Shown in pieces: positions 13,439-22,500 of a DNA stretch of 64,000 nucleotides (the first letter of the stretch is position 1; the number at the start of each line of letters is the position of its first letter). The notes below the pieces were generated by a model. That model saw only the letters and a program-made list of their open reading frames with translations, was not told the DNA's origin and did no database searches. The stretch lies in NCBI GenBank assembly GCA_000708835.1, contig DF237079.1, positions 62,001 to 126,000 on the forward strand, given 5' to 3'. Source of the DNA: Klebsormidium nitens. Taxonomy: Eukaryota > Plantae > Klebsormidiophyceae. The position numbers were made by a program, and so were the translations under genes.

Positions 13439-16400
13439 CTAAATCTCATCGTCCTCGTCTTCGAACGGGTCCTTCTCCGGATAGTCACCAACCTGCACGT
13501 ACGATCACGCTGATCAAATCGAAACACGCCGTTATGAATACGAGCTGACGTGACACCCGTCATGGAACGAAACCACTTTTGCCAAGCGCAAAACAACCTT
13601 CGAAACCTCCCTCCGAAGAGGACCTGGGATTGTGCGCCCTCAACCTACCAATCCACGTAACAAAAAACAGAGAAGCTTCTACACCTGGACATCCGACTTG
13701 GCTTCTCAGTGAAGCGTGCGGAAGTTGCTTGGGGCTCTGTTGATCCGCTCACCTTGACCTTGTCCGGTCGGAGCATGCCGCCGTACCCTGGAGCGCACGT
13801 GAAGAAGCGCTCCCCTTTGACACTGCAAGGTGGCCGGCAGACAGGGTCCAGCATGGGCTCTGAATCTTGTGCGCAGAATTTCGACGACTTCCAAATTCGG
13901 ACTTCTATTCTCTCCTCCACACCCGCAAAGAATGGCTCCAAATGGTCAATGAATACATCCGGACGCATGCGAAAAACTGCAAATCAAGCAACTCTTCGTC
14001 CACTTGTACCACTGGGTGGTTCTCCGCCATCGGTCGACGAGCTTGCTAAGTGCCAGAGCCTGAGACAGCCGGATCATGGCATACCGCGACCAGGAACAGT
14101 AGGAAGCTTAACCCACCTGCCGTCGTTCTTGCCAACCGGCTCGTCGTACTTCACCCCAACCCAGTACCCCGGGGGCAGGCCCTTGCAGTTGTTGCCCACA
14201 AACATGACCTCCCCCCGCTTCGCCCCCGGGTCGACTTCGCACCGGTTACCCACCTGCACACGGGCAAGCTCATAGATCGCATCCCTGACTTGAAGGTCGT
14301 TGACATCAGCATCTGAAAGCCCCACGACCCCACTTCCGCCCCCTTGGAACATGGGTGCAGTGCTAACGTCAGCACCCTCGCCCGCCGCAGCTGGGGTAGC
14401 TATCTGCCACGATTCCTTTTGGCGACTCCTCCGTAACGAAGCACTTCTGAAAGGCCCACTGAGTCGGGGACTTTTAGAGGATGTTAGCCATGTTAGCTTT
14501 TTCGGCCTCGAGAACCCAGCAGTTTGAGAACTGGCATACGAGCCAGAAGGCTGGGAGAGACACTTCTAGAGCCGACGAAACAGAAGCACTCAACCGAGAA
14601 GTTTAACTTCGCAGACCCTCCATCGTACACCGCACTAGTCCATCAACAGGTAGAGCACCACTCAATATGCTCAATCCTGGGCAAAACATCTTGGTTCCTT
14701 CTCCTCACCTTGATGCCTTCGGCTAGATCCGCCATGTGATCGGGACCCGGAGCCTGCAAGCGAAACGGCATACAACGTCACGGAATGCTCCTTTTACAAG
14801 CTCGACAAGAGACCAGATACAATGTCCTTATCGTTGCAGCAGTGCTTCAATTAGGTTCGTCGAGCAGGTGGTAAAATGCGTGTCCGGTTAGTGCGAAACT
14901 AGAACGAATCTTTAGGTGACCAAGATACTAGATGTCCAATTTGTAATAGAAATGGAGAAAACGAGCACCTGCCGCTTTGAAGCCACATTCGTTCTAAAAG
15001 GAAGATCTGTTCCAAAAGGTGGAGTATCGGAGCATACCTCTTTCGGAACATACACCTCCCCGTTCCGCTCCGCTAGTTCCTGCACCGTCAAACCGCCATC
15101 AGTTGCCAGCAGCATAGGACTTGAGCATAGATGACAATTCTCATGCAAGCACTCACTGCGTACGGCTCCGCCGCTGCCACAGAAGTCCACCATGTCTTGT
15201 TGGTTGCAGACTTCAAAGGTAGCTGAATCAGGCCCTTCACACATGGACTCCTCCATTCGACAACCGATGGACAATTCGTGCAAAGGAAACAAGGAGGAAA
15301 TTGCAGAAGAGCAATCTGCTTTGAGTATGCGCCCAAAGATCCAAAACCCTGGTAGCTTGTCTTTCCGGACTTGAGTTTCAAGTAGAAACAAGCATGGGTG
15401 ACTGAATAGAAGTTCCTGATTCCCCCTCGTCATTTCGCTCTTCCACAAGGCGCGACCAGCCCCCGACTTGAGCAGGCTCGCACAGCTGAGAAAAGGGGGG
15501 CCGTGTTCACATACGAGTCTGCAAAAGACAGTGAATCGGGCCTGCTTGCTCACCTTTTGTAATGTCCATGTTGGATCCTGAGCTAGCTTGGTCTCCTTGA
15601 ACTTTCTGTACGTAACTGTAGGGAAAACAACTATGTGAGAGGGCCCTTTTATTTCAAAAAGAACAAACCTTTTAGTAGACAGAGGGAGCGGTTGGTAGTT
15701 AACAACTTAGCAACAAAAGGTCGGAGCATCTTGCGTCATAATGATTCTCCACCAATATCGGCGATGGGGAGCTCCTAACGGCTGAACTACATTGAAATCT
15801 TTCAACATGAGCTGACCACAGTGACTCTTCGTAGTCAGTAAGTGGTTCAAGGGCAACCAGTCACCTTCTCTTTTGTTGTATGCTTCCTCAGAAATCTGGT
15901 ACTTCTCCACCAACGAGGTGTCCTCGAGCCACCCTCCCACAGAGTGTGATTGAGGGTCAAGGTCGATGATGTGGATCCGATAACTGTCAGGGGATAAAGC
16001 AAGGTTCCATCAGTTCTTCTCAATATTCTTTGCAGATTTCTCAATATTCCCAGAACTTATAGCGACTGACTTATCCAGCAATCATGTTGCACACTCTTAT
16101 GGCGGATGGTAGACCTTGGTTTTCCAGCCAGAGAAACAATCATTGACTTTTTGTTGCTGCATATTATATTGAAGAAGTGCAAAGCACTCATGCTGTGCTT
16201 ATCTTTGAAGTAAGTGCAAAGCCGGTGATCGCAGTGCAGACCACTCAATTTAGACCAGCCCAATGAACGCACCCATCCTGAGGAGAGTAGAAGCCCAGCG
16301 GCCGCCCGCTGTCGCTCAGGTCCGCAACTTTCTTGCCAGACTCATCAAGGAGTTGTAAGACCATGGACTCCACAGCGGTTCCAGAGTGTGATCTCAAGCG

Positions 16401-16816
16401 CTCCTTTACGCCCTCAATGCTCGTCTGCAAAGACAGAAGATGGCATCAGTGGTGGACTGCAGATCAGTACACTATAGATGGATCAGCTCCTTCGTCCAGA
16501 AAGAATTCTCTTGCATTCCTATCAAAGACAGTAGTGGTTGTAGGAAATGTTCCCCTTTGTGAGGCAGAAATATTGATACTGATGACGGACGTCGACACAC
16601 AGATTTTGGGAGAAGCAAAGGCAGTTTCGGCAAAGAGATGGCTCCATTTGCAGTGATCATGTAACAGCTTACGTGGAGGTCAAATCGCAGCTCCATGAAG
16701 CGCTGCTTCAGGTTGCTGTGGGAAACATTCAGCAACACAGTGTCGTCTGCCTTATTCTGACTTGAAGGCCCCTGTACATACGCCTTCAGAGCTTGCATAT
16801 CATAGACAGTCCCCAT
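13439..16816 (-). CDS. TBCB: Tubulin-folding cofactor B (ubiquitin-like + CAP-Gly), 9 exons
   Basis: Exons 16816-16676, 16424-16273, 15983-15865 ([23 protein letters not shown]), 15615-15554, 15079-15038, 14753-14709, 14251-14117 (VGNRCEV...[20 protein letters not shown]-Gly), 13822-13753 and 13492-13439 ([16 protein letters not shown]). Confidence 0.93.
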
Positions 16817-17099
16817 GATTGACTACACCGCTTCTTCTTGGGCCCCAACCAAACGTATTCAGTGCGTCCTTGCTACCACCGCTCGACTCCTCTGTTATCC
16901 TCTTGTAATTGCTGCCTGAAGCAGCAGAAAGGACTTTCACCACCACAAGGACCTTGTTTGAATGAAGGTTAGTCAAAGCACTGAACCACTGAACAGATGC
17001 CGTATAGCCGTCCAAGGGAAAGAGCTGCTTTGCTTTATCCAGAAAATGAGAGATCATTGGATCATGAGCTGATCAACAGTGAGCTTGGAAGGTGGAACC

Positions 17100-17108
17100 A
17101 AACCCTAA
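17100..17108 (+). promoter_or_regulatory. Telo-box (AAACCCTAA) in the TBCB / HicB-like divergent promoter
   Basis: Exact AAACCCTAA match lying between two divergent start codons. A single 9-mer is weak evidence. Confidence 0.35.
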
Positions 17109-17288
17109 GTTTTGTGCGGACGATGTCTGGACGGTGGACAGGCGCAAACCTTGAAGTATTCCGGACGTCCGATCAGCCTCAAACCCTTGAATCACGGACG
17201 CGGCCGCGGGCTTCGCGCACGTCACAGCGCCGATTGCATACGCTACCTGTGATACAACTCGGACACTAGAGTCACTTGAGAAGAAAGG

Positions 17289-17654
17289 ATGGCAGAATTC
17301 TTGCGCCGGGTACTAGGGCAAGAACTAAATCAGCCGTACCCACTCTGCTGCAAGTACAGCAAGGCAGAAGGGGAGTGGGAAGGTCGCTTCCCAAACTTCC
17401 CAAACGCCCGGGTGTACGGGGAAAACGTCGAGGAACTGACCGCAAAGGCTGCACATTTACTTCCAATCATAGCGAATATGTTCCTGCTGGCCGAGAAAGA
17501 CCTCCCAAGTCCCTCAGCTGTATACGCAGAAGAGGATCATGTGATGCAGATTCCCCTCCGTTGGGATGCTGTCATCCAGGTCGTTGCTGAGGCAAGAAAC
17601 TACCAAGTCTGCCAAGAGATCATGAAGAAGCGATGCAAAAGATCCCGGCTCTGA
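17289..17654 (+). CDS. Intronless 121-aa protein with a HicB antitoxin-like (UPF0150) N-terminal domain
   Basis: YPLCCKYSKAEGEWEGRFPNFPNARVYGENVEELTAKAAHLLPIIANMFLLAEKDLPSPS aligns by eye with the HicB pattern Y...e.eeggy.v.FPdlPg..t.GetleEa..na.eal......l..g..lP.Ps. The start context is good (aaggATGg). The C-terminus is KKRCKRSRL*. Confidence 0.6.
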   Translation: MAEFLRRVLGQELNQPYPLCCKYSKAEGEWEGRFPNFPNARVYGENVEELTAKAAHLLPIIANMFLLAEKDLPSPSAVYAEEDHVMQIPLRWDAVIQVVAEARNYQVCQEIMKKRCKRSRL

Positions 17655-19525
17655 GGAAGGATAACATCCATGGTCCCTTGCGAAACGTGATTCCAGAGGT
17701 ACTATTCTCAGCATATTAAACTTCGTGTGCAACGACGTAAGGTCAATATTATGGATGATAATCGTTACACGTTGGCTTGACTAGTGATGTGCAACTCCAA
17801 AATGATTTTGACCTGAATCCTTTTGCAACAAGCAAGTGCATTGTCAGAGAATGCTTCGATTTTTATGGACCGGATTCTGGAGACGAGATCGTCTGGCTCC
17901 ATGGTTGTTGTCCAAGCTGCATGTTATCTTCAAGCATTGTAAGTTTTCAAACTCAAGCCAAAGCAGACTGAATCCAGATCATCCAGACCTGCATGCAGCA
18001 CCCACTGTTCAATTCAGCACATGATACTACAAACCGCTTGCAGGTTCCATCTTGCTTCCATGTTTGAATTTCCCTCATAGAGTCTCCCCACTGACTAAGC
18101 TATGAAGCTGTATAATGAGCGGGGCAGGGGTTTCGAATGAACGACCCGTCGCGTCATGTATCCCAACTCAGAAACTGCACGAGATCGAGCCAATAGAAAC
18201 GATGCCGACCGTCTCTATCAGATCTTGTTATATGCATGATACCGTACTCATGCCGCCAATCAACTTCGCACCTGTATCTGTCTTCCTTGTGGCCTTCAAG
18301 GTACTGAGTTCACCAGCAGGGTTCGTGTACTACTATAAGAATTCTGAATTCAGTGTTGTGTACGGTACGATTGCAAAGGTCACAACTTCGGTTAGTATCG
18401 TGATAGAAGCTTTGGAGCCCCTTTGGAGTTCAGCATAGCCCATAGAGACACCGTGACAGTAGCCCCAAGGTACATACTCATGAGTCTACATGTAGGTACG
18501 TTGTGAGAAGCCTCTAGCTTAGCATTCAGCAAGCGCGCTTGCGGAAAACAGCTAGAGATCGAGAAACTTTTTAACCCGGATTATTGCATTGAATTTCATT
18601 TCATGATTTGGAGCGCCTGTTTGAACTTTGCAGGGCTATACAAGGACCACGCGCCTTACATAACGTCTTTTGCACGCATGGCTTTTGGACGACTCCAAAC
18701 TTTCAGAAAACGTGAGTTGATTACATATATATAGTCATCTAGCTTGGCTCGACACATGAGTTGCAACATCAAAAACCGGAGTCCCTTTCCACTATAGCGC
18801 ACCATGCATCGCAAACCAACATGCAGCTTTGATGTTACTTAGTACGCAGCCATGCCCACGGGGGCCCTCAGTTCAGCCACATTGACAATTATTCGTCGAT
18901 TGGTGCGCTGGACTAGACAATGTGCAGGAAGGTCACTTAATTGCAGAACAAGAGAAATGAGTAGCTGCTTTGACTTCATGAGCCTCTAGCGAACCGCACG
19001 GCCGGCACAAAGCTAAGGATCAAATACGTGGTGTTTTAAGCAACCATCTAAGCCATCGATGTAACTGCCCACTGAGCTGTAGCACACTTGACTGTTATGG
19101 CTGGTGTTGACGAAGTTTGCCGACCAAAAACCTTAAAGAATTGCTTACTTTAAATTATAGCTGTCAAGGTCAAGTACCTCTGTTTGACTGTATAAAAATC
19201 AAGTGTCAACCAAAAGCTTGTAGCTGAAGTAACTTCAGCAGGTCAACCTGTTACAACCGATGGTCACAAGCGCCACTGTGCTCAGAGCAGATTGTCCCAG
19301 CACGCGTGACGGCAGTGAGAGGTTCGACTCATCCGAACGTCTTAATAAGTTGCCTTTGTAGGACTATGTTGCTGTCGGGTCTCCTATCAACAATCGATTA
19401 AATATGCTTTCAGCCCCGGGAGACAAAGAACCGACTCTCCTTTGACAAATTCATCTCTGTGAGCAACACAAACTTTGGGTATGTACAAGATATCATCAAC
19501 TCGTTTTTGACCCATCGACCGCAGG

Positions 19526-22500
19526 TCACTTCTCAGGCGTTGCCGGCGTCGCAGGAGCGGCCACCGGGATGTCGCTGACTGTGTCCGGTGCTGGCTGCAT
19601 TTCCGGCGCCTTGGGCGGAACCGGCGCCGGAACGGGAGGAACCTCTTCGGGCAGGTACTTGTGCCACGTCATCTTGAAGCTGATGTTGCCACGGAGTTGG
19701 TCCGCGTTCTTCGCTTTGGCCTTCTGCTCCTCGGGCATGAAAAACGCCTCCACGTGGAGGTCTTGGGAGACGTTCCGTTCCTCGCCGTCCGCAATTCCGG
19801 CGAGCGGAATGACGGCCATGCCGATGAAAGTTGCGCGGCCGAGGACTTCCTGGTCCATGATGACAACAGTCAAATTCTGGAGGGCGGGATCCTGCGAAAG
19901 GGGACAAGGAACACAGTCAGCGTAATCAGAGTTTGAAACGGAACCAGGATAAGCAGAGCCACCTAGGGTGCTCCGATTTAGGAGCCACTGTGACGTCCGC
20001 GAGGGCTCTGTGTAGCATATGGAAGTAACCCAACTAACAATGCGACTGAAGACTGAAAGATACACATGGATTGAGTTTCAAGGTCAAAAAGCACAGAGGT
20101 TGCTCGGTTAAGGTGAGGTGTCCACCAGTATCCAGGAAGCGGTTATCGTGGGAAACAGACAGTGCATGGGAAGGAGACTCGGTCCGTGAACGGCAACATC
20201 TACGCGGCATAACAGGACCACTTGCGGACCTTCGCCAGGTGCGGGGTGTTGACCGAAGGAACTCTTTGCAACCACGTGCAATGACCGTTAGCATCACAAG
20301 ATTTCTACGATTCATATAATGACGGGGTGGTATCAGAAACGTTAACCGCGCGGAACGAAAGGAGCAAAAGGAGCCGCAGAAAACAGCGAGAATTCACTGG
20401 ATTCTCGGAAAGCCAGAAAGTTCACCGGAAGCTCAGACTCAAGCTATGATAGCGTTGAAACGGGAGGTCGCCTCAGCAAGCGTGGTCCTCGAAATGAGAA
20501 GACAGAAAGTGCTGGAGTGCATGCACGATCCAAGGATGCTGGCGAAGATTCGGGACCAGCCGGCGGAGCAGAATGTAGAGGAATGTTGGCGACAAAATCT
20601 GCTGACGGCCTGAGGAAACCGTCAGCCTCGGGCACCATAAAATCGCACCCAAGATGTTGCACGGCCAGTCTGCAAACTCTCAGGTGCGAGTTTTACGACA
20701 GTCGACCATATGGCATACTCCCTGCCTTTGTGGTAGCTATCGAACACTTCGTCGAAATCAACATCTTGGGTCCCAGGTGAAGGGCCCCAAGAGCGGCACT
20801 GTCGCACCTCGACCATGACTTTGAGCTCCTCCTCCCACGTGGGGTTCCGGGTGTTGATCTGGGGCGTCGTCTTGATGATGCGGTCCGCCTTCTTGCGCAC
20901 TGCACCGAACAAGTCTCGATTCATTGGGGAGAGAAGCGCGTGAATGATGATGTTAAGCTGAGGGGACGGGTGGGCTTAGTGTGGGGGTTAGAGTGGGGTT
21001 AGGGTGGGTTAGGGTTATGAGTTCGTCTGTGCCACAGAAGAGTGGTGTTGATATTCGTGGAGCTTATGCATCATAGAACCAAGAGTAGCACGAGAACGGG
21101 TCAGGGACCCCGGCCCAGTCGCTGTTGCTCAGAAAACATACCATGTCAACAAACCGCTTCGCTTCGGCCGACTTCATTAAGGTCCTGTGTCAAGCGAAGA
21201 GAGTGAACGCTCATCTGCGGTCCTCCGGACCAACGAGAACGCTTACAATCAATCACGTGGCACAAAAAGTACAGACCTAGTACAGAACGGTAGTTTACAA
21301 AGCTGTACGTGGACCGGAAATGCGAAGCTGGCGAGCCTAGCAGTTTTCGGTCGACGCAGAACCTTACTATTATGGTCGAAGTAGTCATGCACCGAGTCGA
21401 ACTTCTTGGCTCAGACCATGGGCAACTTTCTGAAACTTTAAAGTTTAGCTTCCATTTCGGGAGAGTCAACCCAGTACGACGTGGCCCACGATCAGACGGG
21501 AAGGCGAGCTGGTACGTACCATAAAACCAGACGATGGGGTCCGGTACCCCTGCCACGTCAGTGAGGCTGCGCATGGTGGGGAGGTCGGCGCAGGCGATGC
21601 TCGAGATCCGCAACTCGCCAGAAGGCCAGAACAAAAGGTCCCTGCACGGATGCGGAAGCGGATTCCGCTATGTTGGCGAAATGACGCGCTCTGTTCCAAG
21701 TTTGGACTCTTCGGATGTCTGTGGATTGTGGCGGACTGTGCAGATCAGAAGCACGTGCTTTCCGACTTCGCTGCCAGGTAAAACTAATAAAAGTACAAAC
21801 CGAGAAGAAACGGTCTTTGGATACAGTCACCGGAAGATGAATTTCGACTCATCATTCCACAACGAAGTTTGGAGGCTTGCAATGGAAAGTTGAACACGTT
21901 ACATAAGAAGCGACTGCCGGCACGTCTTTCGCTCATCGAAACGACCATGTCTTATATAATTGCCCGTCTCCCGACAAGCAATCTCGCCAACTTGGCAGAC
22001 AGCCAGAAATTTTGAAATCTTCCATTGCCCATACGCATCGAGGTCGGAGTCGCGTCGGAAATCATAAGCGATGGCAGAAGTACCCAGACCAATCGCAGCA
22101 AGTTCAACAGGCAGCCAGAGACAGCCTCGATTCTCCTCGAGCAGGCGCCCCCAAAAACCAGTCCTTTCAAACCAGGTGGCAGCGAGCGGCTCACTTGTAA
22201 TTATCCTCCCGTGGGATGATTGGCACCTGCACGTGGGGTCGTGACGTCAGCTTCCTGGGCCGGTGCTGACATCAGGACCGAATCTCGGCGAGAAGCGTCT
22301 CGGTGATGGTGTGAATGGAGAGACGGGTGCACAAATCGCAAACAATGGAATCAATGCCCGTCACGGGCATTGCAATCACACTTTCATCAGACATTGTTTG
22401 CCTTCAGAAAAGATATTTGACTGTGCTGAATCGGGGTAAGGACCGGGCTGGTAAAGCTTGAAGGACGGGGTCTCTTGAAGCCCCGATTTAAATGCTCCAT

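Follow-up and report, generated by a model that had tools for sequence, protein, structure and literature searches.

A transcribed, intron-free Klebsormidium gene with a probable standalone, highly diverged HicB-type N-terminal domain

Introduction

The components of toxin-antitoxin systems are considered to be encoded by prokaryotes and phages. Among them, the HicB antitoxins of type II HicAB systems have been compared here through the structures from E. coli (6hpb/6u0i), S. pneumoniae (5yrz), Y. pestis (HicB3, 4p78/4p7d) and B. pseudomallei (6g1c/6g26); in HicB, the face formed by the beta-sheet and helix alpha1 covers the HicA RNase. Standalone HicB-like/UPF0150 proteins also occur in bacteria, and those considered here are 3kwr of L. 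plantarum (a 'putative RNA-binding protein') and TTHA0281 (2dsy) and TTHA1013 (1wv8) of T. thermophilus. Phage HicB-like proteins are represented by PHROG_497, by the BFVD entry A0A6J5KMA2 and by the description 'nuclease of the RNase H fold, HicB family'.

Klebsormidium is placed near the base of the lineage toward land plants, and bacterial gene acquisitions near the base of that lineage are of wide interest. A search of the literature returned nothing on HicB in connection with Klebsormidium and nothing relevant on eukaryotic HicB. The present analysis concerns a small open reading frame in a 64-kb stretch of Klebsormidium DNA (the window, whose numbering is used throughout). The ORF belongs to a transcribed, protein-coding nuclear gene, and its product is probably a standalone and highly diverged member of the HicB/HicB-like N-domain superfamily, for which a descent and a binding role may be inferred.

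The locus and its neighbours

The coding sequence (17289-17654, + strand) is intact and complete, running from ATG to TGA over 121 codons plus the stop without an intron, as is borne out by the ORF list, the RNA contigs, an orthologue (P0001, described below) and a dN/dS of 0.40. The 121-residue product carries FPNFPN at residues 34-39, YGENVEEL at residues 43-50 and LPSPS at residues 72-76, and its C-terminus reads KKRCKRSRL; the sequence and the RNA contigs agree with the preliminary description on each of these points. The arrangement claimed there, head to head with a gene for tubulin-folding cofactor B (TBCB) at a distance of 472 bp and with a telo-box in between, is likewise confirmed by the coordinates, the TBCB start codon lying at 16816 (- strand) and the 472 bp being the ATG-to-ATG distance.

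An exon-by-exon search of this upstream neighbour returned Ubiquitin_2 (PF14560, E 8e-11) and CAP_GLY (E 3e-10 and 7e-4), with the CAP-Gly domain divided between two exons; its architecture, a TBCB-type ubiquitin-like domain plus CAP-Gly, is on sequence grounds that of TBCB. The first TBCB exon with its 5' UTR occupies 16673-17056 (- strand), as given by the splice joints and by the assignment of Ubiquitin_2 and CAP-Gly to exons. In the RNA assemblies the TBCB contigs end at 17029-17056 and those of the HicB-like gene begin at 17285-17305, and these contig ends delimit a divergent promoter region common to both transcripts (17057-17284, assigned to neither strand). The telo-box AAACCCTAA (17100-17108, + strand) is the sole copy in the 64 kb when both strands are scanned; since about 0.5 copies are expected by chance (an estimate), its presence by itself is weak evidence.

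On the other side, a spliced gene with a weak C2-domain match (18922-20924, - strand, E 0.006) stands tail to tail with the HicB-like gene, about 1.3 kb from the ORF and on one contig with it; its RNA contigs stop at 19893 in a splice-like loose end. The composition of the HicB-like ORF (GC 0.53, GC3 0.59) is host-like, the corresponding values for TBCB being 0.52 and 0.63, with GC3 computed on the joined exons. Flanking repeats of the mobile-element type were searched for around the gene and none were found, and Rfam gave no match at the locus nor on L001, the contig that carries the orthologue.

Transcription

Part of the window is contained in 20 of the 24 public runs listed, which come from eight studies, and the contigs of four runs from four studies were mapped to positions 15000-20000. 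Each of these four runs holds one colinear, unspliced contig of 590-660 nt over the HicB-like ORF (17285-17941, 17293-17885, 17294-17907 and 17305-17893), matching the window at no fewer than 99 letters in 100. The four runs are taken to be RNA on account of exact intron-skipping joints in TBCB (15078/15553, 15615/15865, 15983/16273 and 16424/16673, all four of them CT..AC and hence GT..AG on the minus strand) and of zero RNA depth in several bins between and within the genes of 15000-20000. The colinear unspliced contigs in all four therefore indicate that the HicB-like gene is intron-free and transcribed, and the expression that had been suggested as a check on the preliminary description is present in the RNA assemblies of four studies.

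The transcript extends over 17285-17941 (+ strand), with 5' ends at 17285-17305, 3' ends at 17885-17941 and a 3' UTR of about 230-290 nt; its strand was inferred from the conserved ORF, as the contigs themselves carry none. No contig reaches further than 4 nt upstream of the ATG, and the others start shortly after it. The conserved N-terminus of the orthologue argues for the ATG at 17289 as the probable start codon.

Several further observations were made on these assemblies. In one run (X2), 31 foreign, CT-rich letters are joined at 17293, just after the ATG, and a 'cag' at 17293-17295 could act as a splice acceptor; the 31 letters are absent from the whole window with up to 3 mismatches allowed. 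An upstream exon was accordingly rejected and the gene model left unchanged, and the letters may stem from contig chimerism or from a paralogue, or else form an alternative leader. Within the TBCB intron 15079-15552, low-depth RNA contigs (15078-15548) occur in three of the four runs, which suggests intron retention or pre-mRNA. A single C>G difference at 15264 was seen in the run labelled organism B, which otherwise matches at 99% or better, so that the labels organism A and organism B appear to denote a single species.

Orthologue and selection

An exhaustive phmmer search over 1.84 billion representative sequences returned a single real relative, P0001, a protein of 119 residues with 54% identity (E 1.4e-32), encoded on L001, a 1.9-kb Logan contig of run SRR23617307. 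The further proteins listed by this search (P0002-P0005) consist of tandem repeats and owe their scores to the addition of many stretches worth 0-9 bits each; they were discarded as spurious. One of them, P0004 (603 residues), has a repeat unit of about 100 residues with a stretch of the P-x-CC-x-x-SK-x-G type resembling residues 7-29 of the HicB-like protein; this likeness (48% over 23 residues) was set down to a chance match inflated by repetition. A word-index search with the HicB-like protein found no match, a word search with the two-sequence alignment of the algal protein and P0001 (A1) returned P0001 alone, and pattern and tblastn searches of IMG/VR and the JGI metagenomes with the same alignment found no relatives. 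Since the exact protein was not found in the public protein collection either, the gene seems to be unannotated.

When the window is compared with L001, the ORF aligns (73% nucleotide identity over 243 nt) and the flanks do not, save for one short block. The start (MA..RR) and the core are conserved in P0001, and a purine-rich leader precedes the start in both. Identity to P0001 is 76% over beta1-beta3, 69% in the loop with LP-x-PS, 48% in alpha1, 43% in the C-terminal helix and 11% over the last nine residues. As read from this alignment, the ORF is beyond chance: a second organism keeps its frame from the start codon almost to the end. Nei-Gojobori estimates for the pair (dS 0.93, dN 0.37, dN/dS 0.40) come with an excess of synonymous changes (Fisher p ~8e-5), and the gene is, by this comparison with one orthologue, under purifying selection.

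The short block outside the ORF is non-coding and lies about 450 nt beyond the stop in both sequences (window 18094-18160, L001 1241-1295), with 81% identity over 37 nt by blastn, more shared letters just upstream and no conservation of frame. A low-depth RNA contig (17959-18244) spans it.

That the HicB-like gene is real is shown by its intact, intron-free reading frame, its place among spliced eukaryotic genes, its host-like composition, its occurrence in RNA assemblies and the purifying selection acting on it.

Kinship with HicB

The preliminary description had proposed a comparison with the Pfam profiles HicB_lk_antitox / UPF0150 as a check. Pfam and NCBIfam (PF15919, PF15970 and PF21748 included) gave no family up to E 10 for the HicB-like protein or for P0001, the latter carrying only a precomputed 'weak' PF15970 entry. 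A PADLOC scan of the HicB-like protein produced no usable match, an 'E2' match at E 0.013 over 38 residues having been set aside as chance.

More distant comparisons point in one direction. With phmmer against the PDB sequences, E. coli HicB (6u0i/6hpb) ranks first at E 0.06 over residues 25-115, followed by 3kwr and then by S. pneumoniae HicB (5yrz); a two-sequence profile searched against the PDB retrieved 3kwr only, at E 0.13. PHROG_497, named 'HicB-like', matches residues 17-90 at E 0.001, and every language-model neighbour of the protein is a bacterial HicB cluster (0.89, 178 shared features). BLASTP against E. coli K-12 HicB gave E 7e-7 over residues 17-120, and hhalign of A1 against an alignment of 18 enterobacterial HicB sequences gave 76% probability and E 2.3e-5 over columns 26-92. 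In the reverse direction, when all 1705 pieces of the six-frame translation of the window were searched with E. coli HicB, the HicB-like ORF was the single match (8e-4; the next at 3.3). Both the F-P-x-F/I-P ... G-E-x-V-E-E motif and the loop with LP-x-PS can be aligned with HicB position by position. These tests, modest singly and consistent jointly, indicate a detectable sequence homology to characterised HicB.

The fold was predicted with AlphaFold (AF2) from a two-sequence alignment. The model has a mean pLDDT of 74 (84-88 in the core) and a pTM of 0.61, one of the five models reaching only 41, and shows the order beta1 (16-24), beta2 (29-34), beta3 (37-44), alpha1 (47-67), beta4 (84-89) and a helix (92-119). 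Residues 16-91 (17334-17561, + strand) are assigned the HicB N-terminal-domain fold by AF2, Foldseek, VIA-align and hhalign. The structural check proposed with the preliminary description supports a HicB fold at the level of a model: the topology is that of the HicB N-domain, and HicB or HicB-like/UPF0150 proteins take all of the first 17 places in the Foldseek search of the PDB (best E 8e-4, probability 1.00), with a TM of 0.72 to the isolated N-domain of B. pseudomallei HicB (6g1c). VIA-align Z scores are 10.7-8.5 for nine HicB entries, 6.9 and 5.9 for UPF0150 and below 4 for double-stranded RNA-binding domains (dsRBDs). The structural neighbours in the ESM Atlas are bacterial HicB clusters bar one phage-integrase row, a Bacillota cluster matching residues 1-119 at TM 0.69, and a viral structure library returned phage HicB-like proteins and no convincing match from viruses of eukaryotes.

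The model thus places a beta-beta-beta-alpha-beta fold, predicted to be of the toxin-binding type, at the N-terminal side of the protein. We conclude that residues ~16-91 are a diverged HicB-type N-terminal domain whose membership is at the level of the superfamily and not of a Pfam family; the kinship with the HicB N-terminal domain proposed in the preliminary description is supported at that level by fold and remote sequence similarity.

The C-terminal region

Beyond the domain, the model has one long C-terminal helix (residues 92-119, 17562-17651, + strand, pLDDT 53-68) with the basic end KKRCKRSRL, and no HTH/RHH domain was matched with Pfam HTH_3 and RHH. The BLASTP alignment with E. coli HicB is weak toward its end and stops at HicB residue 104 of 138, about where we take the recognition helix of the E. 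coli HicB HTH to begin. This is a hint that the C-terminal part may be a truncated HTH, for which hhalign gives no homology beyond column 92; the protein may just as well derive from a standalone HicB-like form such as 3kwr. A search downstream of the stop codon found no further HicB-like sequence. The DNA-binding domain that the protein was said to have lost is therefore absent, as no HTH/RHH is present, and the loss itself is just one option, given that standalone HicB-like/UPF0150 proteins exist.

The last three residues, SRL (17643-17651, + strand), fit the plant PTS1 pattern [SA][RK][LMI], with basic residues before them, and could be read as a working PTS1 by which a domesticated antitoxin fold is directed to peroxisomes. 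This reading is unlikely. The alignment with P0001, which ends in ...RRRRSANIVVS, shows that the tripeptide is not conserved, identity falling from 76% in the beta-sheet core to 11% over the last nine residues; the gain of a PTS1 put forward in the preliminary description thus finds no support. A tripeptide match that ends a basic tail can also be chance, and the tail is modelled with low confidence as the end of a helix. The one tail feature common to both orthologues is the basic cluster (KKRCKR in the algal protein and RRRR in P0001), and from this sequence feature nuclear import or nucleic-acid contact would be a somewhat better guess than peroxisomal import.

The missing toxin

The absence of a HicA-like partner from the flanks, noted in the preliminary description, was upheld and extends across the window: none of the ten ORFs flanking the HicB-like gene matches Pfam HicA_toxin, and E. 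coli HicA as a single query found nothing in the six frames of the 64 kb (best E 2.3). The transcript itself, about 650 nt long, contains one conserved ORF, no second ORF being conserved in L001. The data support an orphan gene without HicA within the 64-kb window, a spliced or distant HicA elsewhere being possible.

These results bear on whether the protein could be a working antitoxin, active to this day against a HicA-type RNase that comes either from another locus of the Klebsormidium genome or from bacteria or viruses, and so the unlinked half of a eukaryotic toxin-antitoxin or immunity pair. The toxin-binding domain is the best-conserved part of the protein, beta1-beta3 being 76% identical between the orthologues, and the gene is under purifying selection, both of which speak for such a role; against it stand the lack of any HicA-like ORF in 64 kb and an identity of just 21-28% to functioning HicBs. 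Overall, this role is doubtful.

Origin and proposed function

The HicB-like gene would, in our preferred account, descend from a HicB-type gene of bacteria or phages that was acquired before its two known carriers diverged (dS ~0.9). Every relative recognised by its fold or by a profile comes from bacteria or phages, and the family itself has two members, which makes a bacterial or phage origin the most economical. Among the 1.84 billion representatives searched exhaustively, no prokaryotic sequence scored; with no donor nearer than ~21-28% identity in the collections searched, no meaningful tree can be drawn and transfer is deduced from distribution. Horizontal transfer from bacteria or phage is thus likely, with a donor lineage and a direction that are not identifiable at ~21-28% identity. 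Of the horizontal acquisition that had been suggested earlier, the exclusively bacterial and phage kinship stands, and the donor and direction do not follow from it at this distance.

A lineage-specific orphan that arrived at a beta-beta-beta-alpha-beta sandwich by convergence, without any bacterial ancestry, is improbable. It would account for the lack of a Pfam or NCBIfam match and for the single relative among 1.8 billion representatives, and the model does come from a shallow alignment; yet the PDB phmmer search, PHROG, BLASTP (7e-7), hhalign and the reverse search all indicate HicB alone, the HicB motifs align residue for residue, and the gap in Z between HicB entries and other folds is sharp. 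The weakest alternative, that this is not an algal gene at all (contaminating bacterial DNA, an assembly error or a chance ORF in a non-coding transcript), draws on HicB being typically prokaryotic and on the exact protein being missing from public protein collections, and is highly improbable against spliced TBCB 472 bp away and the C2-domain gene ~1.3 kb away on one contig, an ORF carried at ≥99% identity by RNA assemblies of four studies, a host-like composition and a conserved frame with dN/dS 0.40.

The product of the HicB-like gene, a small soluble protein of the alpha/beta class, may act as a binding module through its conserved, modelled beta-sheet/alpha1 face, without transcriptional autoregulation. 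It could bind a HicA-like RNase or some other protein of the dsRBD fold, or else RNA. It can be speculated, as a long shot, that Klebsormidium keeps a domesticated antitoxin module that neutralises HicA-type (dsRBD-fold) RNases that have their genes at other loci or are introduced by bacteria or viruses; if true, this would amount to an immunity or RNA-control system derived from a toxin-antitoxin pair in the nucleus or cytosol of a streptophyte. More generally, a HicB toxin-binding domain that is fixed in the nuclear DNA of a streptophyte alga, served by a promoter arrangement of eukaryotic type, and transcribed and kept by purifying selection without a toxin or a DNA-binding domain would be a clean eukaryotic domestication of an antitoxin fold. 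For now, the gene is a well-supported curiosity and not a mechanism, in a family of two known members.

Comparison with known systems

Eukaryotic dsRBDs (Dicer, DRB, Staufen, DGCR8) appear in the structural list as a related alpha/beta sandwich, but their Z scores of only 3-4 are far under those of HicB, and the algal protein has no Pfam dsrm match.

Phage HicB-like proteins come closer. A 98-residue Caudovirales protein is matched by Foldseek at E 1e-3 and TM 0.70, in addition to PHROG_497 at E 0.001; nevertheless, the phage proteins are no nearer to the algal protein than are bacterial HicBs, and no relative was found in IMG/VR by pattern and tblastn searches.

Standalone HicB-like/UPF0150 proteins of bacteria share with the algal protein the same fold in a single domain of ~70-100 residues and the lack of a DNA-binding domain. 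Among them, 3kwr is the top match of the two-sequence profile (E 0.13), with 24-28% identity and a Z of 9.1, and 2dsy and 1wv8 have lower Z scores (6.9 and 5.9). Unlike these bacterial proteins, the algal protein has an extra C-terminal helix of 28 residues with a basic end.

With the HicB antitoxins of type II systems, the algal protein shares the beta1-beta2-beta3-alpha1-beta4 domain (Z 8.5-10.7, rmsd 2.2-2.9 over 72-84 residues) as well as the aligned F-P-x-F-P...G-E-x-V-E-E and LP-x-PS motifs, with BLASTP reaching 7e-7 to E. coli HicB. It differs from them in having no C-terminal HTH/RHH DNA-binding domain and in an identity of only 21-25%, below all Pfam thresholds. Further, in contrast to the HicAB arrangement, the algal gene is monocistronic, stands without an adjacent hicA and is transcribed from a divergent promoter region that it shares with TBCB.
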